A DNA stretch of 63,531 nt, filler included, from Octopus bimaculoides (lineage: Eukaryota), in assembly GCF_001194135.2 (NCBI RefSeq). It is 6 parts of 5 records of this genome, joined end to end, with 100 filler letters (N's around TTAATTAATTAA, not from the genome) between each part and the next. Parts side by side here need not be neighbours in the genome. Positions count along the whole stretch, not along the records: positions 25,553 to 47,312 come from NC_069010.1; 5 more parts are not named here. One strand, written 5' to 3'. How positions within the stretch are numbered: the stretch's first letter is position 1; each line of letters begins with the position of its first letter. The notes under the pieces were generated by a model, which saw only the letters and a program-made list of their open reading frames with translations, did no database searches and was not told the DNA's origin. Shown here piece by piece: positions 25,590 through 47,312 of the stretch. The position numbers and the translations under genes are program-made.

Positions 25590-26000
25590 ATATATATGGC
25601 ACCATGATGGATTCTTTTTATATGGTACCAGCACAGATGCTTTTTGCATGGTACTATCATGGTGCTTTTTATGTGTTCAGGACAAGTGTTTTATGTGGTA
25701 CCAACACAGTTGCTTTTCATGTGGTACCAGCACACTTGCTTTTCATGTGGTACCAGCACAAGTGCTTTTCATGCGGTGCCAGCACAGGTCCTTTTTATGT
25801 GGTGCCAGCACTCTTACTTTTCATGTGGTACCAGCACAAGTGCTTTTCATGCGGTGCCAGCATGGATGCTTTTTATGTGGTACCATTGTGGATGCTTTTT
25901 ATGTGGTACCATCATGGATGCTTTTTACATGATACCAGCTTGGTGCCCTTTTATATGGCACCTGCACAGGTGCCTTCTACATGACACCAGCACAATAACA
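25590..26000. repeat. ~21-22-bp minisatellite (TGCTTTTCATGTGGTACCAGCAC-like)
   Basis: Many visible imperfect tandem units. Confidence 0.9.
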
Positions 26001-27713: not shown

Positions 27714-30700
27714 ATTTGAGTGTATGTATATCTCAAAGCTGTGAGATAATGCATTTATCTCACATTCATTAATTCGTTAATTAAGTCACGTTCATTAATT
27801 CAAAAGAATGTGAACAAATGAAACCTTCAATTTGACAAAGAAATCTGGGAGGGTTAACCACCATCCATCAAGATTGACTGCTATTTCTAGCATCGGATCT
27901 TTTTTAAAACGGGGGCCACATTTTTCATTAATGTTTTATGTAGTGTTTTTGGTACGGAAAGACTTTCAAACTTCGTATACTTATCTATTTTGTGTTATAG
28001 AACAGAAATATATTTTTGTATTCGAATTTATTTCATGTAAAAAATTGTCTTATTTCGATAATTTCAACCAATCACTGACAAGTATTCAGTTGTTTACATT
28101 TACTCCTTTGGCTGATTAAGCCATAGCTTCGTTTTATTTGCTTTTTTCATTTTCTTTTTTTTTTCTTCGTTTTATTTGCTTTTTTCGTTTTAAATTTGCT
28201 GTTTTACCCTAACCCTAACCCTATCACCGATAGAATTGTTTCAGAATCGTTTGTTTATGTAGTCAGCACTTAATGTATATCGGCTGAATGGACGTCAGTG
28301 ATTGGTTGAAATTACAGAAATACGACAACTTTAACATGGAATAACTTGGGGATTTCTTTTTTTTTTTTTAAGAAGACTAAGAGAAAAAGATGTTTTATAT
28401 GACACATTCTACCAGTGTGCCAAGTTTCAAAGTGTTTCGTTAATGAAAAATGTGGCCAGGTTTTAAAAAAGATCCCTAGCATCTCCCGTCTCCCTCCACA
28501 GGATCTCAAATATTCCTTTCTTCCTTTCTCTCTTTCAGCTCTCTTTGAGATTGAACTTTTGTCCTTTGTCGAAGACGCTGGCATTGAAGATTATTTTCAA
28601 ATGACTGAAGTAAATATATCTTCTCTTTCTCCTTTTCATTTTTTTTCTTCTTTTCATTTCTTCTCTTCCATTCTTCTTCTCTTTCTATTCATTCTGCAGT
28701 TTCATTAATTTCTATTCATCCTTTGTTTTTTGTCTAGTTTTTTTTTGTTCACTTTTTAATTTTTCCCATTTTTCCTGTTCCAGGAAGAGAAAAGCCAGAT
28801 TCCATTCGACCAAATCCTAAAGATTGCAAATATGGAGAAATCGGTAAATAAACCTCATAGTTATACACACATGTACACTCAATTACATACATTCATATAG
28901 TGTCTGTCACTTACGTGTTTCACTCATTGGACTGTGGCCATGCTGGGGCACCATCTTGAATGAATCAACCTCTGTACTAATTTTTCTTATAAACCTGGTC
29001 CTTATTCCACCAGTCTCTTTTTGCCAAACTGCTAATCACCCCAACACTGATTGTCTAGCGGTAGTAGGGGGGGACAAACATTGACACAAAGACACCAACA
29101 TGCATAAACACACATACACAACAGGTCGCCAAGTAACTTGCTGAAGATCCCTCAACTGGGAGGAGTAGTATTGATGCACAGAAAAGTATCGTGTATCATA
29201 TACTCTTTTACTTGTTTCAATCATTTTTGACTGCGGCCATGCTGGAGCACCGCCTTTATAGTCGAGCAAATCGACCCCAGGACTTATTCTTTGTAAGTCT
29301 AGTACTTATTCAATCGGCCTCTTTTTGCCGAACTGCTAAGTTGCGGGGACGTAAACACACCAGCATCGGTTGTCAAGCGATGGTTGGGGGACAAACACAG
29401 ACACACACACACACATATATATATATACACATACATACGACGGGCTTCTTTCAGTTTCCGTCTACCAAATCCACTCACAAGGTTTTGGTCGGCCCGAGGC
29501 TGTAGTAGAAGACACTTGCCCAAGGTGCCACGCAGTGGGACTGAACCCGGAACCATGTGGTTGGTAAGCAAGCTACTTACCAAGGATTAATTTCTAAGAA
29601 ATTAAACCCATTAGATTTCAACCGGAAGTATTTATCATTGTTACCAGGAGCTGGTGTGCCAATCGTTGTAAAGTCGATCGGTCATGAGTAGACGACGACC
29701 TGTAATTAACGATATTAATAATAAGGATTATCATGAAGTTGCTTAGCATTACCTTTAATTCTTTTAATATGTACACAGCTTTACATAGACCAACACGTGT
29801 TCAATTGCACCGATTAGTAACCATTGCAATTGCAACCCTACTTTAAAACCGGTGCAGTTTCTTTAGGGTCTTTATTTGATATCCTTTTATTTGGCTTTTT
29901 AAAGATTTTCTTTTAATCTACTCTGCGTTGCATAATGTAGGGCTGTCCGTTAAGTTAGACACGAAAAATCTCCATTTCTGTTTCTTTTTCTTTACAGTTT
30001 GGTACAGAATTCTTCAGTGCCAAGAAAATTCGAAAGTCTTACAACAAATACCGTTTGGTAAGTGCTGTTATGTTGTTGTTGTGACGTTGTGAAATGGCCA
30101 TCTTTTGGTGTTGGGAGGCAACTGTCTTGTGATTGTGGTGTTGTGAGGTGATTATGTTGTGGTTGCGGCATTGTGAGGTGGCCATGTTTTGGTGTTGTTA
30201 GGCAGATGTCTTGAGGTGTTGGGATGCAACTGTCTTGCGATTGTGGTGTTGTGAGGTCGTTGTCTGCTTGTTATCGTGTTGTGAGGTGATTATGTTGTGG
30301 TTGCGGCATTGTGAGGTGGCCATGTTTTGGTGTTGTTCGGCAGATGTCTTGAGGTGTTGGGAGGCAACTGTCTTGTGATTGTGGTGTTGTGAGGTTGTCT
30401 GCTGTTGTGGTTGTGGCGTTGTGAGGTGGCCATCTTTTGGTGTTGTTAGGCAGATGTCTTGTGATTGTGGTGTTGTGAGGTGATTATGTTGTGGTTGTGG
30501 TGTTGTGAGGTGGCCATGTTTTGGTGTTGTTAGGCAGATGTTTTGAGGTGTTGGGATGCAACTGTCTTGCGATTGTGGTGTTGTGAGGTCGTTGTCTGCT
30601 TGTTATCGTGTTGTGAGGTGATTATGTTGTGGTTGTGGCATTGTGAAGTGGCCATCTTTTGGTGTTGTTAGGCAAATGTCTTGAGGTGTTGGGAGGCAAC

Positions 30701-31820
30701 TGTCTTGTGATTGTGATGTTGTGAGGTCGTTGTCTGCTGTTGTGAAGTGATTATGTTGTGGTTGTGGCATTGTGAGGTGGCCATCTTTTGGTGGTGTTCG
30801 GCAGATGTCTTGAGGTGTTGGGAGGCAACTGTCTTGTGATTGTGATGTTGTGAGGTCGTTGTCTGCTGTTGTGAAGTGATTATGTTGTGGTTGTGGCATT
30901 GTGAGGTGGCCATCTTTTGGTGGTGTTAGGCAGATGTCTCTTGGTGTTGGGAAGCAACTGTCTTGTGATGGTGGTGTTGTGAGGTCATTGTCTGCTTGTT
31001 ATCGTGTTGTGAGGTGATTATGTTGTGGTTGTGGCATTGTGAGGTGGCCATCTTTTGGTGGTGTTAGGCAGATGTCTCTTGGTGTTGGGAAGCAACTGTC
31101 TTGCGATTATGGTGTTGTGAGGTCGTTGTCTGCTTGTTATCGTGTTGTGAGGTGATTATGTTGTGGTTGTGGCATTGTGAGGTGGCCATCTTTTGGTGTT
31201 AGGCAGATGCCTTATGGTGTTGGGAAGCAACTGTCTTGTGATTGTGGTGTTGTGAGGTCGTCTGCTGTTGTGGTTGTGGCGTTGTGAGATGGCCATCTTT
31301 TGGTGTTGTTAGGCAGATGTCTTGTGATTGTGGTGTTGTGAGGTCGTTGTCTGCTGTTGTGAGGTGATTATGTTGTGGTGTTGTGAGGTGGCCATGTTTT
31401 GGTGTTGTTAGGCAGATGTTTTGAGGTGTTGGGAGGCAACTGTCTTGTGACTGTGGTGTTGTGAGGTCGTTGTCTGCTTGTTATCATGTTGTGAGGTGGT
31501 TCTGTTGTCTCTCCTAACTAATCCTTCCTTCTGCTGTTCCCATTGCAGGCCCTTCTGGTGCTTGACGAGTATGTGCCGTGCAACAGCGAAGAGGAACGTC
31601 AGATCCAAGAGTTACGCCTCTTGGTTCTCCTAAACATGGCCCTCTGCTGTCTCCGTCTCAACAATGCTCCCAAAGCCATCACATATTGCCAGAAAGCTCT
31701 GGCGATTGACAAGAACAACGCTAAGGCGTTTTACAGATTGGGACAGGTAAGTGGGTGTATATACGTGTGTGTATATAAGGACAGGTTGGTTAGGGTATGT
31801 GTATGTTAGGATAGATAAGG

Positions 31821-31855
<35 letters not shown>

Positions 31856-32161
31856 CATATATGTATATATATGTATTTAATGTAACCTCGTGCACATCGG
31901 TGGCGATTTTTTTCTTCCTCCGTTTTTCCCTTCTTTGAACTTTCCTTGTTTCCGACAAAGAGCTCCTCCCGAAACGTCATACTCTCTCTCTTTCCTTTCC
32001 TGAGCGTCTAGTAACACTATCCGTATCACGTCCTCACTTTGTTGTTTTTTTGTTATTGTTTTTTTTTAAAACATATATATATATATATTTTTATATGTAT
32101 ATGTATATATATATATGTGTGTATATATATATATATATGTATATGTATATGTATATATATA

Positions 32162-32194
<33 letters not shown>

Positions 32195-35100
32195 GTTAAA
32201 AAAAAAACAATAGGAAGGGCATCCAGCTGTAGAAACTCTGCCAAATTAGATTGGAGCCTGGTGTTGTCATCCGGTTTCACCAGTCCTCAGTCAAGTCGTC
32301 CAACCCATGCTAGCATGGAAAGCGGACGTTAAACGATGATGATGATGATGATGATATATATATGGACATGTATGTGTATACAGATGTATTTGTGTGTGTC
32401 TGTATTAACCTAATTTATAAACTAATGAATGTGTGTTTTGAGATTTAGCTACTATGTCTAGAAGGCTGTCTGTTTGTCTCCTTTTGCAGGCATACCAGAT
32501 GTTGGGCAAGTACAACGAGGCAGTCACCAACCTAAAGCTGGCTCAGAAGCTGCGACCAACAGATCCGAACGTTTCACAACAACTACAGAAACTGCACAGG
32601 TGAGTTAGGAGGGACCAGGGTTGGCACAAATGGGCTGAGGTAGGGCGGACTATACTCGAGGATTTACGGTAACATTTGACAGTAATCTGAATGCTAAGGG
32701 GTTAATAGTGTATCTAATGTATCCTTCCTTGTTTAGCCCCAGGTCAGTCCTGATCCAGTAGACCTATGATTGAAGATGTTCCAGCTGTGATTGTCCTGTC
32801 TTTTATTCAGGCATAGTGTATCTAGGACTACATTATCTAATGTGTCCTTCTTTATTGCTGTTTAGCCCTAGGTCAGTCCTGATCCTGACTGACCTATGAT
32901 CAAAGATGTTCCAGCTGTGACCGTCCTGTCTTTTATTCAGACATAGTGTATCTAGGACTACATTATCTAATGTGTTCTTCTTTATTGCTGTTTAGCCCTA
33001 GGTTAGTCCTGATCCTGACTGACCTATGATCAAAGATGTTCCAGCTGTGACCGTCCTGTCTTTTATTCAGGCATAGTGTATCTTGGACTACATTATCTAA
33101 TGTGTCCTTCCTTGTTGTTTTGCCCCAAGTCAGGTCTGATCCAGACAGACCTATGATCAGTGACGTTCCAGCTGTGACCATCCTGTCTTTTATTCAGGCA
33201 TTGTGTATCTAGGACTACATTATCTAATGTGTCCTTCCTTGTTGTTTTGCCCCAAGTCAGGTCTGATCCAGACAAATCTATGATCAGTGATGTTCCGTCT
33301 GTGACCACCCTGTCTTTCATTCAGGCATAGTGTATCTAGGACTACATTATCTAATGTGTTCTTCGGTATTTTCGAGTACTGTTAGATAGAGAATGTGACC
33401 ATCCAGGCAGAATTGTTTTATGCCTGCCAACAGGTGATATTCTAGTCCAGGGGTTTTCAAACTTTTTGACTTGCGGACCCCTTTATATTTCAGGCTTTAC
33501 CTTAGGGATCCCCTTATAAACACTTATGAAATTTATACATAAATATTTGCTTAAAATAACATATATTTTTACATTTATTTATTTAACAGTATTTAACAAA
33601 TTAACAAATAGGTTTATTGTCAATTAAAAGATTTCGATTAAAAGACATATAAAATCAAATTGCCCGNNNNNNNNNNNNNNNNNNNNNNNNNNNNNNNNNN
33701 NNNNNNNNNNNNNNNNNNNNNNNNNNNNNNNNNNNNNNNNNNNNNNNNNNNNNNNNNNNNNNNNNNNNNNNNNNNNNNNNNNNNNNNNNNNNNNNNNNNN
33801 NNNNNNNNNNNNNNNNNNNNNNNNNNNNNNNNNNNNNNNNNNNNNNNNNNNNNNNNNNNNNNNNNNNNNNNNNNNNNNNATTCTAGTCCAGGGGTTTTCA
33901 AACTTTTTGACTTGCGGACCCCTTTATATTTCAGGCTTTACCTTAGGGATCCCCTTATAAACACTTATGAAATTTATACATAAATATTTGCTTAAAATAA
34001 CATATATTTTTACATTTATTTATTTAACAGTATTTAACAAATTAACAAATAGGTTTATTGTCAATTAAAAGATTTCGATTAAAAGACATATAAAATCAAA
34101 TTGCCCGTAAAAAGTATTTGCTGTCTACGGACCCCCTGTCTTGTCCTTGTGGTCCCCGGACCACAGTTTGAAAAGCCCTCTTCTAGTCATGTGTTTTTGA
34201 GTACCGTTCATTGGCTAACAGAATCGATGCTCTGCTACAGCCTGTGTAGCAGCCGTGACATTGCTCCTCTCAAAATCACCTCGTTTGTGACGCGGTTCTG
34301 CTTGTCGACCCTCAAGGTCTTTCTGAGGCACCTCAGAAGAGCAGGGCCACCCGTACCTATCGGTAAAAACTACATACCCTCACGCTCACTCACTATGTCT
34401 TTCTCTCTCTTTCTTTCTCTCTTCCCTCAGCGATGTCCTCCAATACAAACAAGACGAGAAAGCCATGTACAAGAAAATGTTTTGCCAAACCACAAAGAAA
34501 TCGCAGTTGTCTTTATGTAAGTATTTCTGGATCTTCCCATTGTTGTTCTTGTTCTTTGTGCAGTTTGATGTTTAAACCCTAGGTCAGTCTTAGACCACCA
34601 AACCTGTAAGCAGTTGATCCAACATGTAAGCAGTAAGCAGTTGATCAAACAAAATGCAGTTCACAGATCTATCGTTTCATACATAATAGGAACCTAACTG
34701 TCTACACACCACACACAAACACACACATGCACATATATCATGGTTCTGGGTTCAGTCCCACAGTGGGGCACCTTGTGCAAGTGTCTTCTACTATGGCCGC
34801 AAGAGGACCAGACCCTTGTCAGTGGATTCAATAAGATGGTAACTATATGAAGCCCATCTTATATACTCTTTTGTTCTTTTACTTGTTTCACTCATTTGAC
34901 TGCGGCCATACTGGAGCACTGCTTTGAAGGGTTTTAGTTGAACAAATCAGTTACATTTTTGAAGCCTAGTACTTACTCTATTGGTCTCTTTTGCTGAACT
35001 GCCAAGTTACGGGGACGTAAACACACCAACATTGGTTACCAAGCTATGTTGGGGTAACACACACACTTATATATATTCTTATATGTTATATATTCTTTTA

Positions 35101-35306
35101 TTTGTTTCAATCATTTGACTGCGGCCATGCTGGAGCACCGCTTTTAGTCGTGTAAATCGACCCCAGGACTTATTCTTTGTAAGCCTTGTACTTATTCTAT
35201 CAGTCTCTCTTGCCAAACTGCTAGCTGACAGGGACGTAAACACACCAGCATCGGTTGTCAAGCGATGTTGGGGGACAAACACAGACACAAACATATACAT
35301 ACATAC

Positions 35307-35349
<43 letters not shown>

Positions 35350-38031
35350 CAACGGGCTTCTTTCAGTTTCCGTCTACCAAATCCACTTACAAGGCTTTGG
35401 TCGGCCCGAGGCTATAGTAGAAGACACTTGCCCAAGGTGCCACGCAGTGGGACTGAACCCAGAACCATGTGGTTTGTAAGCAAGCTACTTACCACACAGC
35501 CACTCAGAAATTTATTTTGTGGAACTATTTTTCGGATATATTCTGTATTCTTTTGTCATATGACGCCAGTGTCAACCTGGATGGTCACATCTGGAGCACT
35601 TTTGTTACAGGTCCAATGCATCAAGGCTGGTCTTCGGCTAGACGACAACATAAACAGCAGCAGCAATTTTTATTCATTTCTAAGATCTCTGTCTCCTCTT
35701 TTTTTTGGTTTTCTTGTGCAGTTCCTTCAAATCGGGAGAACATGGTCCAGGAATCGGGCGAAAAAGTTGTTGAAGTTTCTGAAGAATTTAAAGAAAATGT
35801 CAACAACTACCTTAAGTGAGTGTCTTGTTGCTTACATTAGGGTCATCATCATCATCATCACCATCACTATCATCATTGCCACCACTGTCATCACCACCAT
35901 CGTCATCGTCATTGCCATCATCATCATCACCACCACCACCACCATCATCATTATTTGACCCTTTAGCATTCAAATTACTCTGTCAAATGTGATCCTTATT
36001 TATTCACATTGTTTTGAATTAATCATAGATTATCTCATAGCGTTCAAATTTCAATGATATCATCATCATCATCGTCGTCGTCGTCGTTTAACGTCCGCTT
36101 TCCATGCTGGCATGGGTCGGACGATTTGACTGAGCACTGGTGAAAACCAGATGGCTACACCAGGCTCCAATCTGACTTGGCAGAGTTTCTACAGCTGGAT
36201 GCGCTTCCTAACACCAATCACTCCGAGAGTGTAGTATCGGGGGTTGATAAATTAAATACCAATGAAATACTGGGGGTCGATGTAATACTAGTCCCCTCCC
36301 ACCAAATTTGAGGCACTGTGCCTCCAATAGAAAGGATTATTATTATTATTAAAGCAATGAGCTGGCAGAATTGTAAGCATGTTGGCAAAAATACTTAGCA
36401 GCATTTTGTCCATCTTTGTTCCGAGTTCAAATTCCGCCAAAGTCAAGTTTGCCTGTCATCCTTTTGGGGTCAGTACCAGTCAAATACTGGGGACAGTGTA
36501 ATCGGCTTACCCCCCCTCCCTCACAATTACTGGCTTTGTGCCGAAATTTGGAATGAATATTATTATTATTATTGTTGTTATTTACTTTTGTTATTGCAGG
36601 AACTTTCTCTCAGACAATTGCCGGAGTGAATGTCCAATGCCTGCCTCCAGCATGACCGTGGCCGAGATAGCTTATGTCCTAGAAATAGTCGATGATATGA
36701 AACTCATAGCTGTACAGACTGGTTCGGTGAGTTCAGTTGGCTTCTTAAATATCATGTCACCAGTGGAGCCCCTACCCTCATCGACAGATCATTCCTATCA
36801 CATGTTAACCCTCTCCTAGATGTTCTGGTACATATGCTCTCCCTTGCTGCAGCGAGGTGTGAACTGAGGTAATGTAGAATACAGTGTTGTGTGACAGAGA
36901 CACTACGGTGAGAGATAAATCTCCTCCTGGATAAGATGCCAGTCTATCATGCTAACATTCCCCCAGATGATCTGATACCTATTATTCCTTACATGTTAAG
37001 TGTCCCTCCAGCTCTTCTGTTATTGTATTTCTGTTGTAATACACATTTGTTTCTATTCATCATCGTTTAACATCCGCCTTCCATGTTAGCATGGGTGGGA
37101 TGGTTTCACAAGAGCCAGTCAGGCAAAAGCCGGCACTAGACTTCTGTGACTATTTTGGCAGGATTTTTACAGCTGGATGCCCTTCCTAAAACCAGCCAAC
37201 TCAGCAGAGTGGACTTGGTGCTTTTTATCGGGCGCAAGCGAGGGCAGTTTTGGCAAGGCTTTTACAGTCGGATGCCCTTCCGCACACCAAACACTTTACA
37301 GTGTGGACTGGATGCTTTTAAGTGGCACCGGCACTGACAGGGTCACCAAGAATTTGCAAGACAAAAAAAAAAATCTTTCAAGCCGGGAGTGGGTATTGGA
37401 GGAGGTGATCTTGTGTTGGATGACAAAAGGTTAGAGTGAGACAGACAGAGAAACAGGTGTCTTGCTGTAGAGGAAGTACAAGCTTAACTGGCCAGAGAGA
37501 GGGGTTAGGAATGAAGACAGAAATAGGTGTACTACCGCAAAGGAAATACATGGCTACCCAACCTGAGCGAAGCGCATGAAAGTAACTAAACAATTTACTA
37601 AAATACTTTTGTCGTTAATTAATCTGGTGTTTAGAACATAAATTACCATGATTTAACGAGGGAATATTTTAATTGGGATCATTTTTCAACAGGAAATTCG
37701 TATTATGGAAACAAGGGCAGTTTCAATGAGATTTCGTATTAAAAGGAGTGTTGGTCGTAAGTGGATCTCAAGTTAGTTTTAAGTGTCTTATTTCTGTGCA
37801 ACCTCACTTTATTTACTCCCCAGCCCCACTCTACTTAGTGTTTAACCTCACTCAAGATAGTGTACAGTTCCACTCAGGTGACTCTCCAGCTTCACTCCAC
37901 TGATGTCTGTCTTCTAACTCTCTACTCCTCTATTACAGGGTGAAAACATTCAGATCGAAATCCGCAAGAACAACAACAACAAGACCAGCAACAATAGGAA
38001 AGTGAAGAAGCGTGAAATGGTGTGGAAGTAA
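26067..38031 (+). CDS. FKBP6: FKBP6/Shutdown-like FKBP-type PPIase + TPR co-chaperone; 11 exons, 5'-incomplete
   Basis: Exons 26067-26156, 27343-27474, 28539-28609, 28784-28843, 29998-30057, 31549-31746, 32490-32599, 34431-34516, 35722-35815, 36600-36726 and 37939-38031 all have AG/GT boundaries and compatible phases, ending at TAA 38029-38031. The translation has an FKBP domain (VHYTGFFEFADEPFDSSRLRG..GELSRFLISPEYGFGDFGCPPRIP..LFEIELLSF), close to the FKBP6 pattern Y.G..E..D.PFDS/GCPP.IP/LFEIELL, then TPRs (LLNMALCCLRLNNAPKAITYCQKALAIDKNNAKAFYRLGQAYQMLGKYNEA) and YK.MF. Confidence 0.9.
26258..26593 (+). mobile_element. tRNA-derived SINE (family B)
   Basis: Near-identical to the reverse complement of 5681-6060. 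Confidence 0.85.
27343..27474 (+). CDS. FKBP6: FKBP6 exon (MVIPGW..GCPPRIPKAIT)
   Basis: TACAG acceptor, GTCAGT donor, phase 1/1, FKBP motif. Confidence 0.9.
27895..28475. mobile_element. Palindromic MITE with GGATC termini and a central (TAACCC)n (Merlin-like)
   Basis: Inverted arms; 8-bp TSD CTAGCATC at 27887-94 and 28476-83; CCCTAACCCTAACCCTA at ~28207-28222. Confidence 0.85.
28539..28609 (+). CDS. FKBP6: FKBP6 exon (LFEIELLSFVEDAGIEDYFQMTE)
   Basis: TTTCAG acceptor, GTAAAT donor; C-terminal strand of the FKBP domain. Confidence 0.88.
28784..28843 (+). CDS. FKBP6: FKBP6 exon (EEKSQIPFDQILKIANMEKS)
   Basis: TTCCAG acceptor, GTAAAT donor, phase 0/0. Confidence 0.85.
29201..29581 (-). mobile_element. 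tRNA-derived SINE (family C)
   Basis: Same sequence as 35091-35504; partial copies at 34742-35060, 61066-61203 and 28910-29140; head contains GGTTCAGTCCC and GGCACCTTGGGCAAGT. Confidence 0.85.
29998..30057 (+). CDS. FKBP6: FKBP6 exon (TPR1 start: FGTEFFSAKKIRKSYNKYRL)
   Basis: TTTACAG acceptor, GTAAGT donor, phase 0/0. Confidence 0.88.
30065..31500. repeat. G/T-rich higher-order minisatellite in a FKBP6 intron
   Basis: Recurring TGTTGTGAGGT submotif grouped into variable larger blocks (GGCCATCTTTTGG..GGCAGATGTC..GCAACTGTCTTG). Confidence 0.9.
31549..31746 (+). CDS. FKBP6: FKBP6 exon (TPR2-3)
   Basis: TGCAG acceptor, GTAAGT donor; TPR consensus NMALC..AITYCQKALAID.NNAKAFYRLGQ. Confidence 0.92.
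31948..31983 (+). ncRNA. Degenerate minimal hammerhead-like remnant inside a dispersed repeat (31871-32050)
   Basis: GTTT-CCGACAA-AGAGCTCCTCCC-GAAACGT-C-ATAC has the same layout as 14906-14940 but a mutated core and stem II. Confidence 0.3.
32490..32599 (+). CDS. FKBP6: FKBP6 exon (TPR3: AYQMLGKYNEAVTNLKLAQKLRPTD)
   Basis: TTTGCAG acceptor, GTGAGT donor, phase 0/2. Confidence 0.9.
32705..33362. repeat. ~104-bp tandem repeat, about 6 copies
   Basis: CTAGGACTACATTATCTAATGTG..GACCTATGATC..TTCCAGCTGTGACC recurs about every 104 bp. Confidence 0.9.
33448..34180. mobile_element. hAT (Charlie-like) MITE
   Basis: TIRs CAGGGGTTTTCAAACT / AGTTTGAAAAGCCCTC; 8-bp TSD TTCTAGTC at 33440-47 and 34181-88. 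Its left ~227 bp are duplicated across the N-gap, probably an assembly overlap. Confidence 0.88.
34431..34516 (+). CDS. FKBP6: FKBP6 exon (DVLQYKQDEKAMYKKMFCQTTKKSQLSL)
   Basis: CCTCAG acceptor, GTAAGT donor, phase 2/1; EK.MYKKMF helix typical after FKBP TPRs. Confidence 0.88.
35091..35504 (-). mobile_element. tRNA-derived SINE (family C)
   Basis: High identity to 29201-29581. Confidence 0.85.
35722..37938 (+). CDS. FKBP6: FKBP6 C-terminal extension exons 35722-35815 and 36600-36726
   Basis: GTGCAG/GTGAGT and TTGCAG/GTGAGT boundaries; phases 1/2 and 2/0 join the flanking exons. Confidence 0.75.
36061..36240. mobile_element. Dispersed SINE-like repeat with (CAT)n end (family D); other copies at 32205-32355, 37060-37450 and 40175-40218
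   Basis: Shared CATCATCGTTTAACGTCCGCTTTCCATGCT..CATGGG motif. Confidence 0.7.
37939..38031 (+). CDS. FKBP6: FKBP6 terminal coding exon (GENIQIEIRK..VWK*)
   Basis: Polypyrimidine + TACAG acceptor, phase 0, open to TAA. Confidence 0.7.
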   Translation, partial: GENIQIEIRKNNNNKTSNNRKVKKREMVWK

Positions 38032-38140: not shown

Positions 38141-38418
38141 CAGGGTGTCTACAAGGTCTGGGTACATGGAGTAAATTAAATATAAGAAATAATAATTTCT
38201 TAAAGTATGTGTTAATCCCCATGTGGCTACATGGAGTAAATAAAATCATAACATAAGCAATTAAATATAAGAAATAATAATTTCTTAAAGTATGTGTTAA
38301 ATCCCCATGTGGGTACATGGAGTAAATAAAATCATAGCATAAACAATCAAATATAAGAAATAATGATTTCTTAAAGTATGTGTTAATCCTCATGTACCCA
38401 GAGTTTGAGGACACCCTG
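38141..38418. mobile_element. Tc1/mariner-type MITE with internal ~70-bp tandem repeats
   Basis: TIRs CAGGGTGTCT..GGGTACATG / CATGTACCCAG..GACACCCTG with TA flanks. Confidence 0.8.
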
Positions 38419-40329
38419 TATATTCACATACATACTCACATATAATGTATGTATGTGTGTGAATATGTATATATATGTATGTATTTTTGTGTATGTCTGT
38501 GTATTAATATATGTATGTATATACATACACACACATAAATATATATACACACACATACATATAAATACACACATAAAGATCTTTTACTCATTCCATCTAT
38601 TTTATTAAGACTGTTATATATATATGTATGTATGTATATATATATATGTATGTATGTATATATATATGTATGTATATATATATATTATTTTTTAATTTTT
38701 ATTTGATTTTTTTTTTTNNNNNNNNNNNNNNNNNNNNNNNNNNNNNNNNNNNNNNNNNNNNNNNNNNNNNNNNNNNNNNNNNNNNNNNNNNNNNNNNNNN
38801 NNNNNNNNNNNNNNNNNNNNNNNNNNNNNNNNNNNNNNNNNNNNNNNNNNNNNNNNNNNNNNNNNNNNNNNNNNNNNNNNNNNNNNNNNNNNNNNNNNNN
38901 NNNNNNNNNNNNNNNNNNNNNNNNNNNNNNNNNNNNNNNNNNNNNNNNNNNNNNNNNNNNNNNNNNNNNNNNNNNNNNNNNNNNNNNNNNNNNNNNNNNN
39001 NNNNNNNNNNNNNNNNNNNNNNNNNNNNNNNNNNNNNNNNNNNNNNNNNNNNNNNNNNNNNNNNNNNNNNNNNNNNNNNNNNNNNNNNNNNNNNNNNNNN
39101 NNNNNNNNNNNNNNNNNNNNNNNNNNNNNNNNNNNNNNNNNNNNNNNNNNNNNNNNNNNNNNNNNNNNNNNNNNNNNNNNNNNNNNNNNNNNNNNNNNNN
39201 NNNNNNNNNNNNNNNNNNNNNNNNNNNNNNNNNNNNNNNNNNNNNNNNNNNNNNNNNNNNNNNNNNNNNNNNNNNNNNNNNNNNNNNNNNNNNNNNNNNN
39301 NNNNNNNNNNNNATATATATATATGCATCTGTGTGTATATGTATGTATATATATATATATATATATGGAGGACAGTCTGTATATATGTATGTATGTATCT
39401 ATATATATATGAATGTATGTATATATATTTTATATGCATGTGTATATATATATATATATATGCATGTAAGTATCTATATATATATATATTATACATATAC
39501 ACACACAAACCTATATATATGCACATACTCACAGAGACTCATACAGGAACATAAGTGGTTGAAACCATGTAACACAAGGTCTTTTGGTGTGATGCTCCAC
39601 CGATTCTGCCAACTGCTCTCTTAGAAACTTCATTATTTTCCCAAATATATCTTTTCCCATTCTTTCCCTTCCTTAGTGTCTCTCTGACACACATACACAC
39701 ACACACACATATATTTGTATGTATACTTTCACATATATACGCATGTATGTTTATATAGCTTAATGGTACAGACCACTCAGCTGGAATTTTGAGAAGTAGA
39801 GGATTTAATCTGCCAAAAATATCTTCCCTATCTCCTAAACTGTTTCCATAGCTATTCTGCTTATGAAACTTGACTTAATTTTTTCTAAAATTCCAAATTA
39901 CTTGATGCTCCGAAGTGTGTCTGTAAATATATTTATATATATATAATGTTATACTCTTCCAAGATGTTGTGATAGTGACTGGGCACACAATACTATAATA
40001 GTAAAGGAAACAAGTGTTTTCATTGGTTGGTTGGGCGAGAGGTGACTGGACTCTGGGCTTGTCCTCTCATATCTCTCCCCCAACCATAGAAGTCCTTAAA
40101 ACGGTGCAATAAAAGCCTGTTATTTCATTAGAAAAGAAAAAGAAAAAGCAAAGATTTCACAAGACATCTTTAATCATCATCATCATCATCGTTTAATGTC
40201 CGCTTTCCATGCTAGCATNNNNNNNNNNNNNNNNNNNNNNNNNNNNNNNNNNNNNNNNNNNNNNNNNNNNNNNNNNNNNNNNNNNNNNNNNNNNNNNNNN
40301 NNNNNNNNNNNNNNNNNNCATTCATGTCA

Positions 40330-40667: not shown

Positions 40668-40960
40668 GAAAATATATGAACACCTTGCAAGTTTTTTCTG
40701 AATACAATTTTCCTGGGACTCTTCAGGGGTTGTAGCTTAGTGTTTTGCCTCAACTTCCAATAATGTCTATCTGTTCCTCCTCATGATAAAATGCATCTCT
40801 TTCTAAAGCCAGATGTAAACAATTCTTGCCTTCTGCATCAACAGCACCTTTTGAAAATATAATATGAACACCTTGCAAGTTTTTTCTGAATACAATTTTC
40901 CTGGGACTCTTCAGGGGTCGTAGCTTAGTGTTTTGCCTCATCTTCCAAGCTTGAAATAAA
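40668..40960 (-). pseudogene. Decayed ankyrin-repeat gene fragment, with an ~85-bp direct duplication (40668-40750 / 40852-40940)
   Basis: NLQGVHIIFSKGAVDAEGKNCLHLALERD matches the ankyrin pattern L..GA...D..G..xLHLA. Confidence 0.7.
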
Positions 40961-41072
40961 GGCAGGGTCATCTGGTCCTTCAGGGGAACTGTTGTCTAGG
41001 TCAGTAGGTAGCTTCCTTTTTTGGGTTTCACTTTCTCTGAGATTGAAATAACATCATCCTACTGTGTGCCCT

Positions 41073-41079
41073 CACAAAA

Positions 41080-41110
<31 letters not shown>

Positions 41111-41191
41111 CTTCCGCGCTGATCCGTCCAAGCCCGTTCCCTTGGCTGTGGTTTTGCTAGACAGTGGGAATCTCATTGATCCATTCATGCA

Positions 41192-41223
<32 letters not shown>
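41073..41223 (-). pseudogene. 28S rRNA: 28S rDNA fragment starting exactly at the R2 insertion site
   Basis: The reverse complement reads TAGCCAAATGCCTCGTCATCTAATTAGTGACGTGCATGAATGGATCAATGAGATTCCCACTGT..GCCAAGGGAACGGGCTTGG..GAAGACCCTGTTGAGCTTGACTCTAGT, i.e. conserved 28S sequence with substitutions and an ~13-nt deletion. Confidence 0.95.
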
Positions 41224-42300
41224 GTCCAACTTGCTTTCGCTATCTTTCCTTGTTAATTTAACATGGGCGGTCCCACTGCGCTCGCCAAATAGTGACCTGG
41301 ATCAAGCACTATCATAAGCCGAGGGTAAGGCCCCAACAGCGCACGAGGCCGACAGGGGGTTCGAATTGAAGGGCGACTGACTGGACGAAACCGACAGGCC
41401 CCCTACGCCTGTCATTGGACACTCTTTCGGGCATGGTCTCTGTTGGGGCCAAGCTTCCGGATGCTACGTGGGACGGGTCTAGTCAGCGCCTGTACCCCGC
41501 CCTGCGATGGAGCTGCAGGGAAACGGGGTCTCGATACACGCACAACAAGCGAGGGACTTGAGGAGTGTCCAACGATTGCCGCAAGATGGAAAAGCGACTA
41601 CGACTACAAATCGACCGGCGAAACTGAGAAATACCGACCCAGCAACCGAGAAACTCAGACACGGACATAGCGGGACCGTGCGACTGTATATCGTCGCTAC
41701 ACGATCCTGACGAAACCTCGAACCAAAAGCGACCGGCACCGAATACTACGAAACCCAGCCGAATCACTAAACACCAAGAGCCGGAGGGTGCCTTCGCATG
41801 CCCTGTCCTGATATGAGGTCCCCGAGCGAACCCTGAGAGACCGTAGTCAGAACCTGCCGGATGGAACTGGCAGTAAACTCTAGAAACGACGTCGACGCCC
41901 AGGTAGGAGGGGATTATCGCCCACACTCCCACTGTAATCGAACGTTGGGACACGCCCCTTGATCCACCCTCATGGATCAGTCCCTAAGCATGCTGTACGT
42001 GCAGAGCATTGCTGTCCTGCTCAGCAACTTCATTAANNNNNNNNNNGTAGTCAGAACCTGCCGGATGGAACTGGCAGTAAACTCTAGAAACGACGTCGAC
42101 GCCCAGGTAGGAGGGGATTATCGCCCACACTCCCACTGTAATCGAACGTTGGGACACGCCCCTTGATCCACCCTCATGGATCAGTCCCTAAGCATGCTGT
42201 ACGTGCAGAGCATTGCTGTCCTGCTCAGCAACTTCATTAACGACTTGTCCCTAATGCACAGAGCTTTCAATGCCCTCTCGGCCTCGCGGCTCCAGGCACA
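41224..42300 (-). mobile_element. 5'-truncated R2 retrotransposon: C-terminus of the ORF plus 3' UTR
   Basis: 42181-42300 translates AWSREAERALKALCIRDKSLMKLLSRTAMLCTYSMLRD*, resembling the end of an R2 restriction-like endonuclease domain. A GC-rich UTR follows and ends precisely at 28S TAGCC, replacing the normal upstream TTAAGG. Confidence 0.8.
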
Positions 42301-42625
42301 AATATTTAAAAATCCACTTATCTGACATAAGTATGGATTCCTTCTTATAATGAAACAAATCTTTTTTTATAGCAAGGTGCAAACAACTATTGCTACCTCT
42401 GGATGAAAAAGGGCTCAACCTTAATCCTAACCCTCTCTCACAGCAGAAATTTCAAAATCCACTTATCTGACATAAGTATGTATTCCTTCCCATAATGAAA
42501 CCAATCTTTCTTTACAGCAAGATGTAAACAACTATTGCTACCTCTGTCAACAGCGCCTTTTTGAAATAAAATGTGGACCCCCTCCAAGCAGACGCTTGGA
42601 CCCAGCATGGGTTTTCTCAACACAA
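42301..42625 (-). pseudogene. Decayed ankyrin-repeat fragments (~140-bp unit)
   Basis: EGVHILFQKGAVDRGSNSCLHLAVKKDWF plus a partial second unit. Confidence 0.7.
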
Positions 42626-42629
42626 TAAA

Positions 42630-43110
42630 AAATATAAAGACGCTATTGTTTGATCTGTATCTTAAATTTACCTGTTGTATATGCATAACTTGGTATATTG
42701 TAGAACGTTCTTTTCATTTCTCTATTTCTTTTTTAGGAAGACAATTCTCTCTCATGTTTGGTTCTTCATATAAACATAGTTTGATGTTGACCATGTCTTG
42801 AAAAGGAAAAGATGATCCCCCTTGTGTTGTTCATGTGAATCTGAAAAGTTTATCAATTGATTTTGCATTGTATGATTTACCCCTGTTGGGTGTACCTTCC
42901 ATTATAAATGTATTTCTTTTTGGTATATTTTGATGTAAGTTGTTCTATAGTTCTTGGACAAATTGTTGAGTATCAATGGATTGGATATCCATAATTCTCT
43001 CGAATATTTTGAATGATAAGTCTAGATTATGACAGTCATTGGTTTTGTAAGATTTGCAAAATTCATCATTTCAGGATAATTTTGAAATCCGAGAGATATT
43101 GAGGAGGTTT
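42630..43110 (-). pseudogene. Endogenous parvovirus-like NS1 helicase fragment of a second, divergent lineage (copy 3)
   Basis: Hand translation IPKRNTFIMEGTPNRGKSYNAKSIDKLFRFT*TTQGGSSFPFQDMVNIKLCLYEEP; Walker A 42873-42896, Walker B LYEEP; in-frame stops hide it from the ORF track. Confidence 0.8.
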
Positions 43111-43123: not shown

Positions 43124-43900
43124 TTACGCAGTTCGCTTAAAGTATCTTTTCTTAGAATTACCAACAATTGAGACTTGGCAAGCAATGTTTGTCACTTGAA
43201 TTTTTGTGTAGTTTTGCCATATTGTTAACCAAATTAATGGGTTCAGTTCTTTTTGTCCCCATTCTTTTAGTTGTGGCATTGGTCTATGCGTTTTGTATAG
43301 GAACATTCTTGCTTTTTATGGCTTCTTCTTCTTGTGAACATCTGTCCCAAGGGAATGAGTTTCCGGTGCTTAAACAGGGTGTGCGCTTCATTATTCTTTC
43401 TGCCTGGTGTTTTTATGTTTATGTAGGTATCTGTACCTTCTAGGATGCATTTTGCCTCCTCGATATTGGTGTTGACGAACTACATTTCGTCAGTAAAAAT
43501 TAAAGTTTTGTCGATACAAGTACCGAATGTGAAATTATCGGATGCTTGGCATCGCATCCTACCGCAGTTCAGGAACGTAAGATGTAGCGCTTTCCCGAAT
43601 TGGGTGCTCCGTGAATGTGGAGAGAATTTTTCTTGGGTAGAATTTTGTGACATACGTCGAATATGTCTTTGGTGAATGCTTGCGAATCGATGTGGAGGAA
43701 GGATGTCCAGCTTTCATAAATTCCTAGAGAGGTAGTGACATTCCAGTAGGATACACGTTCGTGTACAAAGGTAACAAAAAGTCCACAGACGCAGAAATTT
43801 TCGGCCCAGTAGGGCGAAAATTGCTGTAAAAAAACAGACAACAGTTCGAATCCAAGTAGAATACACAACCACAAAATAACGATAGACGAACAAAAACGAA
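43124..43900 (-). pseudogene. Endogenous parvovirus/densovirus-like NS1 SF3 helicase fragment (copy 2, most complete)
   Basis: PKKNSLHIHGAPNSGKR (43587-43610), frameshift, then NCGRMRCQASDNFTFGTCIDKTLIFTDEM*..EEAKCILEG..INIKHQAERIMKRTPCLSTGNSFPW..AIKARMF: motifs A, B, B', C and Arg finger in order. Confidence 0.88.
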
Positions 43901-43949
43901 CTCACTCAACAATAGCAGGTAGCAGAGAAAATTCTCGATACACAGCTGA

Positions 43950-44630
43950 AAAAAGGCTCAACCCTAACCCTCTCTCACAACAGAAATTTCAAAATCCACT
44001 TATCTGACATAAGTATGGATTCCTTCTCATAATGAAACAAATCTTTCTTTACAGCAAGGTGTAAACAACTATTGCCACCTTGAATTTTTATGTAGTTTTG
44101 CCATATTGTTAACCACATTAATGGGTTCAGTTCTTTTTGTCCCCATTCTTTTAGTTGTGGCATTGGTCTATGCGTTTTGTATAGGAGCATTCTTGCTTTT
44201 ATGGCTTCTTCTTTTTTTATAGCAAGGTGTAAACAACTATTGCTACCTCTCGATGAAAAAAGGCTCAACCCTAACCCTAACCCTCTCTCACAGCAGAAAT
44301 TTCAAAATCCACTTATCTGACATAAGTATGGATTCCTTCCCATAGTGAAACAAATCCTTCTTTACAGCAAGGTGTAAACAATTATTGCTACCTCTGGATG
44401 AAAAAAGGCTCAACCCTCACCCTAACCCTCTCTCACAGCAGAGATTTCAAAATCCACTTATCTGACATAAGTATGGATTCCTTCCCATAATGAAACAAAT
44501 CTTTCTTTACAGCAAGGTGTAAACAATTATTGCCACCTCTGTCAACAGCACCTTTTGAAATAAAATGTGGACCCCCCTCCAAGGGGACTCTTGGACCCAG
44601 CATGGATTTTCTCAACACAATAGATTTTAT
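43950..44630 (-). repeat. Tandem ~140-145-bp ankyrin-fragment units with an embedded NS1 piece
   Basis: The unit AGGCTCAACCCTAACCCTCTCTCACAGCAGAAATTTCAAAATCCACTTATCTGACATAAG..ACAGCAAGGTGTAAACAACTATTG recurs at ~43954, ~44261 and ~44406; the minus strand reads G.N.CLHLAVKKDLF. Confidence 0.8.
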
Positions 44631-44889
44631 CACAATTGAAGATGTTCCTCAAACTTTTTGTGTTGTCCCGTTTGGAACATATTTCCATTGTCCCTGAATT
44701 CCCTATTTTTCACCAGTTCAAAGAGGTTATCCCCAAACTTGGTCTACAGTTTTGAGTTTTGGGATCTTTTTTTTTTCTTCCGTTTTTGAAGCTCTGTGAC
44801 ATATTCAACTTAAAATGTCTTCTGCTGCTTTCACCTACAATTGAGACACGACCAAGCAATGTCTGTCTGTTTGTCTCAGTCTCCCTTTT

Positions 44890-45436
44890 ATTCCGACAAT
44901 GTCTAACTTCATCTCATCCAACATGTCCATGAGTTCATTCTCACGACGAAAGGAATCTATCTTCAAAGCAAGAGGGAGACATTTATGGCCTTTCCCATCA
45001 ACAGCACCTTTGGAAAATGTCAATCCTTCAAAGGTGGCCCCTAGATACAGCAAGGAGCAGTGTTTCCATATCACCACAGTTCTGTCTCCATGTATTTTAC
45101 AGACCCTGGGACATTCTCACTACAATAGATTTTATCAGAATTGAAAATGTTCCTTCTCTTCTTGTGTTGTTCCTGTTAGAACATCTGACCATTTCTATGA
45201 AGAGTGTTAATATCTGCCTCTTCAGCTGTTAACATGTGAATCTTCCCAAGGTGACCCCTGGAGATGGCTTAACCAACTCCTCGTGCAACACGGTAGCTGT
45301 CCCGAGTGTTGCTCTCAGCAGCCACTTCCGTTGAAGAGATGATCCTCTTCATGAAGACACATTGCTTCTCCAGCTGGGCACTCAGACACCCGAACTCTGC
45401 CTTCCTGTTGTTGTAAGGTTGGGTACTTTCAGCCAT
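44890..45436 (-). pseudogene. Decayed ankyrin-repeat host gene exon beginning at a splice acceptor + ATG
   Basis: TTTTTCTGTGTTATTTCAG|ATGGCTGAA at ~45436; downstream frames read AEEADINTL, KSIV and FSKGAVDGKGHKCLPLA..DMLDE; frameshifted. Confidence 0.5.
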
Positions 45437-45779: not shown

Positions 45780-46440
45780 AATAAGATTGAATACCAGAGA
45801 AATGGCCAGTCACTTCTTTAAGTAGAGGCATTGGTTGAATTGGTTGAATCGTTTTGAATATAAACATTCTGGCTCAAATTGCTGCCTTTTCCTGTGGACA
45901 TCTATCCGATGGTGTTTTAGAATTCTTTCGTATTGGAGTTTTGTTTTGCCCTATATTTCTGTACTTTCCCGTATGCATTTACCTTCTTCAATATTAGTGT
46001 TGATGAACCATATTTCGTCAGTGAATATCAAGGTTTTGTCAATGCATGTTCCGAAAGTAAAGTTGTCGTTTGCTTGACAACGCATTCGTCCACAGTTCAT
46101 TAAGTCGTTTCTTATTGATCGTAAAATGTAGCCTTTTCCAGAATTTGGAACTCCATGTATATGTAGTGAGTTTCTTTTCGGAAGAATTTTCTGGCAGACA
46201 TCGAAGAGATTTTTAGCAGATGTTACGTGATTAATATGGTGGTACATTGTCCACTTTTCGTAAATCCCTAAGGATGTTTTGACATCCCAGAAGGTGTTAG
46301 ATGCTTCTTCAAAGAACATTTTTTTATCTTGAATTTTGGTCGCATATTGGAGTCATGCGGTTCTCAATCTGTAGTTGTGTGGCTGCAGGTAGTAGCCAGG
46401 AATTTAAGTTTGGTGTATTTCAGTATATGGACATCCATGT
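45780..46440 (-). pseudogene. Endogenous parvovirus/densovirus-like NS1 SF3 helicase fragment (copy 1)
   Basis: PKRNSLHIHGVPNSGKGYIL (Walker A 46131-46154), LIFTDE (Walker B), EEGKCI (B'), AAI*ARMF (Arg-finger region); stops and deletions present. Confidence 0.85.
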
Positions 46441-46444: not shown

Positions 46445-47312
46445 TAGTACATATTTTTTCCGACAGTTAATACGAAGTGTGTTATATCTCCTAAGCCTGT
46501 AGAGTTATATTACAAAAATCCTTACCTTTGTCGTAGGGAACTGAGGTAGCCAGTATAGACCATTCCAAGGAGAATTGTTTATTGCAATTTTTCAGTTCCC
46601 AAATAAATTTACTTAGGCCGGTGCTGTTAGCTTTATTCCTATCCCTAAATGAAGAATAATGGTTCGATATTCTCTTGGAGACCTGCGTCGATGAGCTACC
46701 TACCTAAAACGAGACATCTGCGTAAGACATTACCTTACATTGATAAACCACATTCTTGGTCTTGGCATTTGCACTTAAAAACTTAATTCTATTAGGATTT
46801 GATTCCGAGATGCTAATCTTATTATTGTTACAGATATTGTTATGATTCCTAATATTGTACGTACTACCTATATTAATACCTAAATGACTATTGCCATCAT
46901 ATGAGTGTGTTAAATTACTGGAGTAATTATTATAGTTATTGATATAAACATTACTATTATCATCATAACTGGGATGGCTGTCTAGAGATGAATCTAAAAG
47001 CCTGAAGTTATGGGAAGATATAATCTGTAACAAATTTTTAGTATTCGAAAACCCAAATCTAACCTTATGTGAGTTGATTATTGGGTAATAGTAGGAACCC
47101 CTAGGAAAGTTCCTACTCACCGCGTCTTGGAACTGCCGGACCAAATTTGATTTAACTTGCTTCCCAAATGGGAGGATGAGCCAGATATTATCATCAAATC
47201 TAGTTACAGTATTAGTGTGGTTGAATAGATGAAGATTTTTGTTTTTGTTAAAGTGTTTAGAGCCAGTTGGGCCTCCTCTCTTATGTGAGTGATAAGCATG
47301 ATCCACTTTCTC
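46445..47312 (-). mobile_element. Penelope-like element (Naiad-like), RT C-terminus + GIY-YIG endonuclease, decayed
   Basis: IWLILPFGKQVKSNL..FP..YYPIINSHKVRFGFSNTKNLLQIISSHN matches the PLE post-RT motif. Then NVVYQCKV..F*VGSSSTQVSKRISNHYSSFRDRNKANSTGLSKFIWELK..EWSILATSVPYDKGKDFCN is the GIY-YIG, with TAG in place of the Y of YVG. Confidence 0.85.

Follow-up and report, generated by a model that had tools for sequence, protein, structure and literature searches.

A 5'-truncated R2-like remnant with a short 28S tail at an Octopus bimaculoides locus outside rDNA

Results

An R2-type 3' end joined to 28S sequence

The 63,531-nt stretch of Octopus bimaculoides DNA analysed here (the window, along whose full length all coordinates are counted) contains a piece of about 21.7 kb, 25553-47312 from NC_069010.1, in which the 3' end of an element of the R2 type, a retrotransposon without long terminal repeats (non-LTR), is joined to 28S ribosomal RNA (rRNA) gene sequence. 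This joining is real; the block reads on the minus strand over a corrected span of 41058-42299 and lies outside any ribosomal DNA (rDNA) unit as far as the piece shows. The block is a dead, 5'-truncated octopod R2 copy, and we put the chances at about even that it arose by ectopic insertion of a read-through R2-28S RNA, a case of 3' transduction. The copy can do nothing now, since it has no reverse transcriptase, endonuclease or ribozyme.

At the junction (41224/41223) the R2 3' end meets 28S exactly at the canonical ...TTAAGG/TAGCCAAATGCC site, and this 3' junction is identical to that of published octopod R2. The 28S tail (41058-41223, minus strand, 166 nt) starts with TAGCCAAATGCC at the canonical site and ends ...GGCACACAGTAGG. 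It matches the Rfam model LSU_rRNA_eukarya from model position 2280 onward with 125.9 bits (E 5.7e-32), and the exact 28S 32-mer TAGCCAAATGCCTCGTCATCTAATTAGTGACG occurs once, at 41223->41192, with 0 matches in 100 shuffles. A preliminary description of the locus had proposed that an R2-like open reading frame (ORF) end and a long 3' untranslated region (UTR) join 28S exactly here, and this holds in each of its parts (39 codons, a 753-nt UTR, the junction at 41223 and the Rfam match).

The tail corresponds to the first 179 nt downstream of the R2 site in octopod 28S, now reduced to 166 nt, and shares 95.2% identity with the 28S that borders R2 in O. sinensis and O. vulgaris. Its 8 substitutions in 166 nt comprise 6 CpG transitions (of 12 CpGs) and 2 changes among 142 non-CpG positions, and its CpG observed/expected ratio (o/e) is 0.65 as against 1.02 in the adjoining 3' UTR. 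Alignment to O. sinensis 28S places a 13-nt deletion at 41160-41166 (minus strand), which removes one ACTGTC repeat and 7 nt between the two ACTGTC direct repeats (CCCACTGTCCCTATCTACTGTCTAG); it is of the slippage or microhomology type, and either DNA replication or reverse transcription could cause it. At its far end the tail stops at ...CACAGTAGG (41058), where real 28S goes on CGTAGCATAGG and the window goes on ATGATGTTATT. The preliminary description's "about 150 bp of degenerate 28S" was thus right as to a short, altered tail, and is to be corrected to 166 nt at 95.2% identity with a 13-nt deletion.

The tail carries octopod-specific 28S bases (GGATCAA, ACTGTCTAG, GGACGGATC and GTCCGGTTTTGTGAGGGCACAC), which recur in the 28S tail of an O. 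vulgaris locus described below (L002) and in the 28S published for O. vulgaris, O. sinensis and Eledone. Several of these differences from the Rfam consensus (GGATCAA, GGACGGATC) were at one point read as decay, a reading dropped because published octopod 28S shows them to be native bases. A link between the 13-nt deletion and the target site of R1 was likewise dropped in favour of the ACTGTC direct repeats present in octopod 28S. R1 inserts 74 bp downstream of the R2 site, and R1 was rejected as the source element on account of that position. The piggyBac element Pokey inserts at TTAA 2 bp upstream of the R2 site; as a source it would leave TTAAGG beside TAGCC, which is not seen.

Assignment of the upstream block to R2

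The block upstream of the 28S tail begins with the last 39 codons of an R2-type ORF (CAWSREAERALKALCIRDKSLMKLLSRTAMLCTYSMLRD; 42184-42299, minus strand), a 5'-truncated remnant that would correspond to the region past the restriction-like endonuclease (RLE) domain. Its first codon spans 42300, and the 5' junction is ambiguous over 42296-42303 in the alignment to paralogous repeat units. By sequence and translation the ORF ends at a TGA stop (42181-42183, minus strand), repeated at 41977-41979 in a duplicated contig end. An exhaustive HMMER search of 1.84 billion representatives gave the ORF tail two meaningful matches, each at 61% identity over 38 residues: P0001 (E 2.3e-5) and P0003 (E 1.7e-4), the latter being XP_052824441.1 of Octopus bimaculoides, whose C-terminal end ...YNMLRD compares with ...YSMLRD in the window. 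Further Octopus relatives (P0004, P0005 and P0006) align with the ORF tail in the same pattern, and identity to the C-termini of Octopus R2-like proteins, measured with P0001 and P0003-P0005, is 59-62%. In a tblastn search of the 21.7-kb piece, R2-like proteins match 42297-42184 at E 5e-11 to 6e-10.

P0001 and P0003 are themselves C-terminal restriction-like-endonuclease domains (CCHC, then PDL...DVT...) and match R2 proteins of known structure in PDB: 9nl2, 9nl3 and 9dou (R2Tg) at E 2e-21 to 1e-13, and 8gh6 (R2Bm) at E ~5e-5 to 4e-6. The alignment of P0003 with the PDB R2 proteins extends into the region covered by the window's tail. Searched directly against PDB, the 39-mer gave chance HSP82 matches only, so that the R2 assignment of the ORF tail is transitive, by way of P0001 and P0003; a word-index protein search with the ORF tail returned zero candidates.

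The 3' UTR (41224-41976, minus strand, 753 nt) is GC-rich and ends ...GCAAGTTGGAC directly before 28S. Over its final ~55 nt it can be aligned to the R2 3' ends at L002 and at a second octopod locus, L001, and Smith-Waterman comparison against dinucleotide shuffles gives a modest signal for an internal block that resembles the 3' UTR of the O. vulgaris element R2-1_OVu (z 6.1) and a sequencing-read contig, L004 (z 7.8). About 40-53 nt before the R2 3' end lies a putative hairpin, GUGGG-ACCG-CCCAU (41263-41276, minus strand), which is also present in L001, in L002 and in the Eledone element R2-1_ECi, the 3' UTR text of which includes it as GTGGGACCTCCCAC. Its 5 pairs are kept in 3/3 sequences, with one G-C replaced by G-U and no compensatory change (consensus GUGGG-ACCR-CCCAY). 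Judged by homology, the upstream block is R2, because the similarity of the ORF tail, the shared 3'-terminal block and hairpin, and the exact canonical 3' junction all point to it; the preliminary description would have been undone by a lack of similarity to R2 or other RLE elements, and the ORF tail, the UTR block and the hairpin are each R2-like.

Other searches of this region were negative. The Rfam R2 3' UTR family has no match in the piece, and homology searches with a 156-aa ORF lying in the 3' UTR gave nothing. Exact scans for this R2's 3' junction found 0 matches in viral and metagenome contigs, as did an exact scan of metagenomes for the octopod-specific 28S stretch. The parent element of the window's copy was not found in protein, viral-contig and metagenome searches. 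The reverse transcriptase and endonuclease parts are absent from the window copy owing to its 5' truncation, and an Rfam scan of the piece matched no ribozyme family that would represent the 5' hepatitis delta virus-like ribozyme, as expected given truncation to the last 872 nt. An octopod/mollusc 5' motif, CCTTG..G.GG.AAGAGAGCTT, is missing from four fetched loci, a scan in which the window was not included.

Among DNA relatives of the window's R2 tail, L004 (a 1007-nt contig, Logan SRR11869390) is the closest found, with 70% identity over 133 nt; it holds an R2 C-terminal region in which the usual ...RD stop is read through, followed by at least 490 nt of GC-rich sequence.

An unmerged contig overlap inside the block

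The block is interrupted by an assembly gap of 10 N (42037-42046) between two overlapping contig ends. The 194 nt following it (42047-42240) are an exact second copy of 41843-42036, a 194/194-nt suffix-prefix overlap that ends and starts exactly at the gap; the same duplicate was recovered by repeat search (family D4, 100%) and by Tandem Repeats Finder (period 204, 100% matches). It represents two overlapping contig ends scaffolded with a placeholder gap, an unmerged overlap that is not genome, and not a biological duplication. The preliminary description had the feature at 41073-42300, where it does lie, and its true span is 41058-42299, with ~204 positions being artefact because of the duplicated contig end and the gap.

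Collapsed, the R2 sequence reads 41224-42036 and then 42241-42299, so that the R2 remnant retains 872 nt and the true insert measures ~1.04 kb. Flank, 28S and 813 nt of R2 are on the left contig (40319-42036), and 253 nt of R2 and flank on the right one (42047 onward). The reading frame is untouched by the gap, as the ORF tail and stop lie wholly in the right-hand contig, and the ORF tail is partly repeated in the left-hand one. There are five gaps in the piece.

Ectopic position and flanking DNA

R2 ordinarily resides only within rRNA genes. The preliminary description placed the junction outside the rDNA array, and the piece agrees with this throughout. The sole large-subunit rRNA match in 25553-47312 is the tail itself (41058-41223), with no other rRNA match; the upstream 28S half-site ACTATGACTCTCTTAAGG is absent from the window when searched with up to 3 mismatches; and tblastn finds no further R2 coding sequence in the 21.7 kb. 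At the R2 5' end there is no upstream 28S (...CTCTTAAGG) and a host 145-nt repeat stands there instead. The window copy is therefore an ectopic R2 fragment and not an rDNA insertion, given the absence of upstream 28S and other rRNA and the host repeat at its 5' end. The R2 block forms a GC island (56% GC, CpG o/e 0.96) between flanks of 34-40% GC and CpG o/e 0.4-0.5.

The flank beside the truncated R2 5' end consists of two 145-nt tandem units (42300-42593) with paralogues at 43947-44541. Copies of the unit (42304-42593 and 43947-44541) are 91-95% alike, encode G-x-N-x-C-L-H-L-A-[VI]-K-K-[DE]...SDKWILKFLL on the minus strand, and align to within a few bases of the R2 5' junction (42296-42303). 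On the other side, next to where the 28S tail ends, the flank (40949-41057) has no second copy in the piece and shows neither a target-site duplication (TSD) nor an A-run nor a continuation of 28S. Neither blastn nor Smith-Waterman comparison against shuffles finds a paralogue of it in the piece; an 11/15 by-eye likeness of its end to a repeat unit was judged to be chance.

The surroundings are made up of DNA-level tandem and segmental duplications in AT-rich, CpG-depleted sequence, and nothing links them to the R2 insert, so the RNA-templated assembly of the mosaic suggested by the preliminary description finds no support. Nor are ankyrin fragments on both sides, as had been claimed, confirmed. 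The flanking repeat units have just the short G-x-N-x-C-L-H-L-A motif; the best Pfam Ank score, 18.3 bits (E 0.003), falls short of the 21.1-bit cut-off and occurs only in the ORF at 43975-44268, 1.7 kb from the insert, and no Pfam family reaches E <=1 in the ORFs at 40750-40971, 42441-42713, 44436-44648 and 44838-45116, with no ankyrin in those that abut it.

At 36985-37056 (minus strand) tblastn gives a further, weak alignment (E 0.03-0.12, 38-42% over 24 aa) to the stretch of R2 that immediately precedes CCHC; either chance or a remnant of another non-LTR element could account for it.

Further octopod R2 copies with 28S tails

L001 and L002 are the loci that encode P0003 and P0005. L001 (O. 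bimaculoides CM046606.1:77304577-77315191) contains an orphan R2/28S junction at 5616-5980: a degenerate R2 ORF, an AT-rich 3' UTR of ~275 nt, and TAGCCAAATGCC with ~91 nt of 28S, followed by unrelated DNA. Its tail has three CpG-to-TpG changes in common with the window's tail, and its R2 lineage differs. L002 (O. vulgaris OX597831.1:79833296-79843847) contains at 2276-6146 a near-full-length but broken three-zinc-finger R2 of at least 3.4 kb with a ~360-nt UTR; its 233-nt 28S tail matches modern 28S without a difference through the expansion segment and gives way to DNA resembling a short interspersed element (SINE). A second, inverted R2 scrap in L002 (10379-10500, minus strand), ~4.3 kb from the main copy, joins a coding remnant (...RKRLLAVVLGEDAG...) to ~37 nt of degenerate 28S.

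The upstream 28S half-site is absent from both loci. All octopod copies compared (4/4, the window's included, and not a genome-wide sample) thus have a short downstream 28S tail of ~37, 91, 179 or 233 nt and no upstream 28S.

The tails of L001 and L002 both carry ACTATCTAG, and that of L002 GGCAGAATCAG, where the 28S bordering R2 in O. vulgaris and O. sinensis reads ACTGTCTAG and GGACGGATCGG; these differences may reflect intragenomic 28S variants or reversions.

Discussion

Proposed origin from a read-through R2-28S RNA

The copy displays the pattern of 3' transduction, in that the downstream source flank has been carried along (179 nt of 28S), the upstream flank is absent and the R2 part (872 nt) is truncated at its 5' end. 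We favour an RNA origin because a 28S tail of arbitrary length, the lack of upstream 28S and the 5' truncation all match a read-through RNA reverse-transcribed at a non-target nick. Had the copies derived from random DNA fragments spanning the junction, 28S arms this short would have a joint probability of ~4e-4 under a crude uniform model.

In the mechanism we propose, R2 would be transcribed only within pre-rRNA and its own ribozyme would free the R2 5' end, so that upstream 28S would be lost; PMC3774820 and PMC3414825 describe such release of the R2 5' end by the ribozyme. The 3' end would not be cut precisely, and some R2 RNAs would keep a short stretch of downstream 28S. One such read-through RNA would have been reverse-transcribed at a nick or break outside the rDNA by R2's own enzyme, which would bind the 3' UTR. 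Luan and Eickbush reportedly found in 1996 that the R2 reverse transcriptase can use RNA templates carrying downstream 28S. Synthesis would have begun at or near the RNA 3' end, inside 28S, and its early stop would have produced the 5' truncation, which PMC4370867 gives as the usual outcome of target-primed reverse transcription. The cDNA would then have been joined without a recognisable TSD, and methylation-type CpG decay and a slippage deletion would later have altered the 28S tail. More tentatively, and with rather less than an even chance in our judgment, octopod R2 may have been mobilised repeatedly outside the rDNA, now or recently, in the form of unprocessed R2-28S RNAs, seeding fragments with ~37-233-nt tails.

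Several points weigh against an RNA origin. Nothing at the outer junctions is specific to reverse transcription: inspection of both, as the preliminary description had advised, shows no TSD (no direct repeat of at least 8 nt adjoining), no untemplated run and no microhomology beyond 2 nt. The empty site is not rebuildable from the paralogous units, with a right flank that aligns and a left flank that has no paralogue. The searches for a parent element, against which the divergence of the R2 part would be gauged, were negative. The 28S tail has lost 6/12 CpGs next to a UTR with o/e 1.02, which is odd if the two arrived jointly, the numbers being small. The 28S tails may once have been longer and been cut down by later deletions or insertions; the uniform-fragment model is a rough one, and the four copies are no genome-wide sample. 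Of the two routes named in the preliminary description, the copying of an R2-inserted rDNA unit or of a read-through R2-28S RNA into this locus, the placement of R2 outside the rDNA is supported, and the data lean to the RNA without proving it, there being no TSD and no empty site.

Alternative explanations

The same plain outer junctions, with neither TSD, tail nor microhomology, look like blunt end-joining capture, and the locus is unstable, duplicated DNA. An R2-inserted rDNA fragment, from extrachromosomal rDNA or a broken array, could accordingly have been captured at the DNA level by end joining or ectopic recombination and perhaps trimmed later, and the two opposite-orientation R2/28S scraps within 5 kb in L002 could be what remains of a rearranged rDNA block. 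We hold this relocation to be unlikely, though deserving of serious weight: random breakage should sometimes retain upstream 28S or long downstream arms, but all four octopod copies have 28S downstream only, over 37-233 nt, even where at least 3.4 kb of R2 is kept, and no other rDNA (upstream or further 28S, intergenic spacer, 18S or 5.8S) is present in the 21.7 kb. The stronger CpG decay of the tail (o/e 0.65) relative to the UTR (1.02, with 1.04-1.11 in the rDNA-resident R2-1_OVu and R2-1_OSi) could instead mean two steps, in which an active R2 inserted site-specifically into an older orphan 28S scrap, the upstream half of which disappeared at the 5' junction. The contrast is significant (Fisher p 0.001-0.03) if the parental o/e was 1.11-1.25, but it is gone (p 0.18) if the parental UTR stood at ~1.4, as in the Eledone R2-1_ECi, and the non-CpG divergence of the tail is just 2/142. 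Since recognition by R2 requires 28S on the upstream side of the cut, of which nothing remains, and since the host 145-nt repeat abuts the R2 5' end, so that an extra deletion ending exactly there would be required, such a sequence of events is improbable.

Two further explanations concern the assembly and the element itself. R2-bearing rDNA reads or contigs might have been misjoined to unrelated repeat-rich sequence: both R2 and rDNA occur in many copies, one of the five gaps in the piece is a scaffolding gap with duplicated contig ends inside the insert, and neither flank is independently confirmed, exact-product look-ups of window ORFs having returned no record. Yet neither outer junction crosses a contig boundary, the 194-nt overlap between the two contigs is perfect, the tail, with its 8 substitutions and a deletion relative to functional 28S, is not simply rDNA reads, and the same kind of orphan junction occurs in chromosome-level assemblies (L001 of O. 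bimaculoides, L002 of O. vulgaris), which makes a chimera quite improbable. Least probable of all, to our mind, is that the 28S stretch is an intrinsic, fixed 3' part of a derived R2 lineage with relaxed or lost target specificity. 28S-derived sequence in R2 3' UTRs and non-specific R2 families are documented (PMC5035012), and several octopod ectopic copies have tails, but a single copy of this GC-rich lineage is at hand, and the tail lengths differ in every copy (~37, 91, 179 and 233 nt). The tail moreover starts exactly at the canonical site and follows the host's own 28S, including the fast-evolving expansion segment (100% in L002); exact starts and host-tracking tails point to repeated fresh capture and not to an inherited part of the element.

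Relation to known systems

rDNA-resident R2 has been published for four octopods, R2-1_OVu (Octopus vulgaris), R2-1_OSi (O. sinensis), R2-1_ORu (O. rubescens) and R2-1_ECi (Eledone cirrhosa), in a table that gives both 28S flanks and only the starts of the UTRs (PMC13188248, Additional file 16; Genome Biol 2026). The R2 family predicted in the preliminary description therefore exists at the level of the order, and so does an rDNA-resident parent, the exact parent not having been found. These elements have the same 3' junction (.../TAGCCAAATGCC), the same downstream 28S variant and a GC-rich long 3' UTR like that of the window, which shares the UTR block with R2-1_OVu (z 6.1) and the hairpin GUGGG-ACCN-CCCAY with R2-1_ECi. 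They are full-length with 28S on both sides, whereas the window copy has 872 nt, no upstream 28S and a position outside the rDNA. As blastn of the window's 3' UTR against the published UTR starts of R2-1_OVu, R2-1_OSi and R2-1_ECi, to which comparison with the published octopod R2 is restricted, finds nothing, the copy would belong to a different sub-lineage or species from these.

Extra-rDNA copies of R2 are known from Drosophila pseudoobscura, sechellia, simulans, willistoni and yakuba, and ectopic R1 copies in Drosophila carry <=14 nt of downstream 28S (Stage & Eickbush 2009, PMC2718515). Like the window's copy, the Drosophila R-element copies are incomplete, slightly diverged, placed outside the 28S gene, and carry 28S at the 3' end. 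The window differs in its cephalopod host and in a 28S tail of 179 nt (37-233 in the other octopod copies) as opposed to <=14 nt in Drosophila R1. In 3' transduction by LINE-1 and other non-LTR elements, read-through past the 3' end carries the downstream flank to a new site. The window's copy would resemble LINE-1 transduction in the carried downstream flank and the 5' truncation; unlike LINE-1, it has neither poly(A) nor TSD. Since R2 itself lacks both a promoter and a polyadenylation signal, the co-transcript reads through into 28S by default and not by bypassing a terminator.

28S-derived sequence inside the 3' UTR has been described for actinopterygian R2 and R2Hm-B, and non-specific R2 for R2NS-1_SMed, R2NS-1_CSi and the oyster R2-1_CGi; of the oyster copies, one adjoins 28S and one does not (Kojima et al. 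2016, PMC5035012). As in the window, 28S sequence there stands at an R2 3' end away from its canonical context, with a molluscan precedent. In those families, however, the 28S part is fixed and diverged, whereas the window's tail starts at the canonical site, tracks the present host 28S and belongs to a set in which length varies between copies.

Implications

The locus is an ordinary kind of transposon debris. Ectopic R2 copies and octopod R2 were already known; what is modestly new is the recurrence and length of the octopod 28S tails. The window and three other orphan junctions suggest that R2 occasionally lands outside the rDNA carrying downstream 28S. Though inert, the element marks its source genome, octopod by its 28S and dispersed repeats, as one in which an R2 lineage with a long GC-rich 3' UTR is or was active. 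If octopod R2 was repeatedly mobilised as read-through RNA, the 28S tails would be a natural record of R2 RNA 3' ends in vivo and of R2 enzyme priming at non-target sites, and would point to a cephalopod R2 lineage with leaky target specificity; both R2 RNA 3'-end formation and strictness of targeting bear on the use of R2 proteins for site-specific transgene insertion. For annotation, neither 28S-like matches nor scraps of R2-like ORFs should be taken as evidence of rDNA loci in octopus chromosomes, and gap-flanking duplicates inflate R2/28S features of this kind.

Other features of the piece

Two Parvo_NS1-like (superfamily 3 helicase) pseudogene fragments resemble endogenous parvovirus- or densovirus-like remnants. 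One lies at 45951-46352 (minus strand; Pfam PF01057, 2.3e-10), and the other, at 43270-43874 (minus strand), is frameshifted over three frames and scores 5.4e-7 with its three pieces joined for the search; they are 69.5% identical in DNA and lie inside a duplicated unit of ~2-2.4 kb. A stop-free stretch at 31543-31809 (plus strand) with a clear TPR repeat (TPR_1, 5e-8) is probably an exon of a host TPR-domain gene. A 202-codon stop-free frame (46707-47312, minus strand) runs off the edge of the piece beside a 70-codon frame (46494-46703, minus strand); neither has a Pfam match, and the shorter has a faint, putative GIY-YIG-like look (...YVGSS...R...H...).

Minisatellites occupy 30068-31478 (period 138, also 129 and 396 nt), 32730-33364 (127 nt), 25593-25991 (26/52/78 nt) and 38174-38395 (86 nt), and several of them produce long spurious ORFs. 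Rfam microRNA matches (mir-297, mir-466, mir-1277 and others) at 31819-32195, 35273-35369 and 38420-39760 fall on TA/TG microsatellite far below gathering scores and were set aside as false positives, and a bacterial promoter and terminator scan of the piece was disregarded as irrelevant. Dispersed SINE-like repeats lie at 32211-32373, 36075-36236, 37057-37225 and 40176-40218; in comparison with O. bimaculoides three of the four are 89-95% identical and 37057-37225 is 75% identical, and in comparison with O. sinensis the longer matches reach 73-82% and the 40-nt one 95%.

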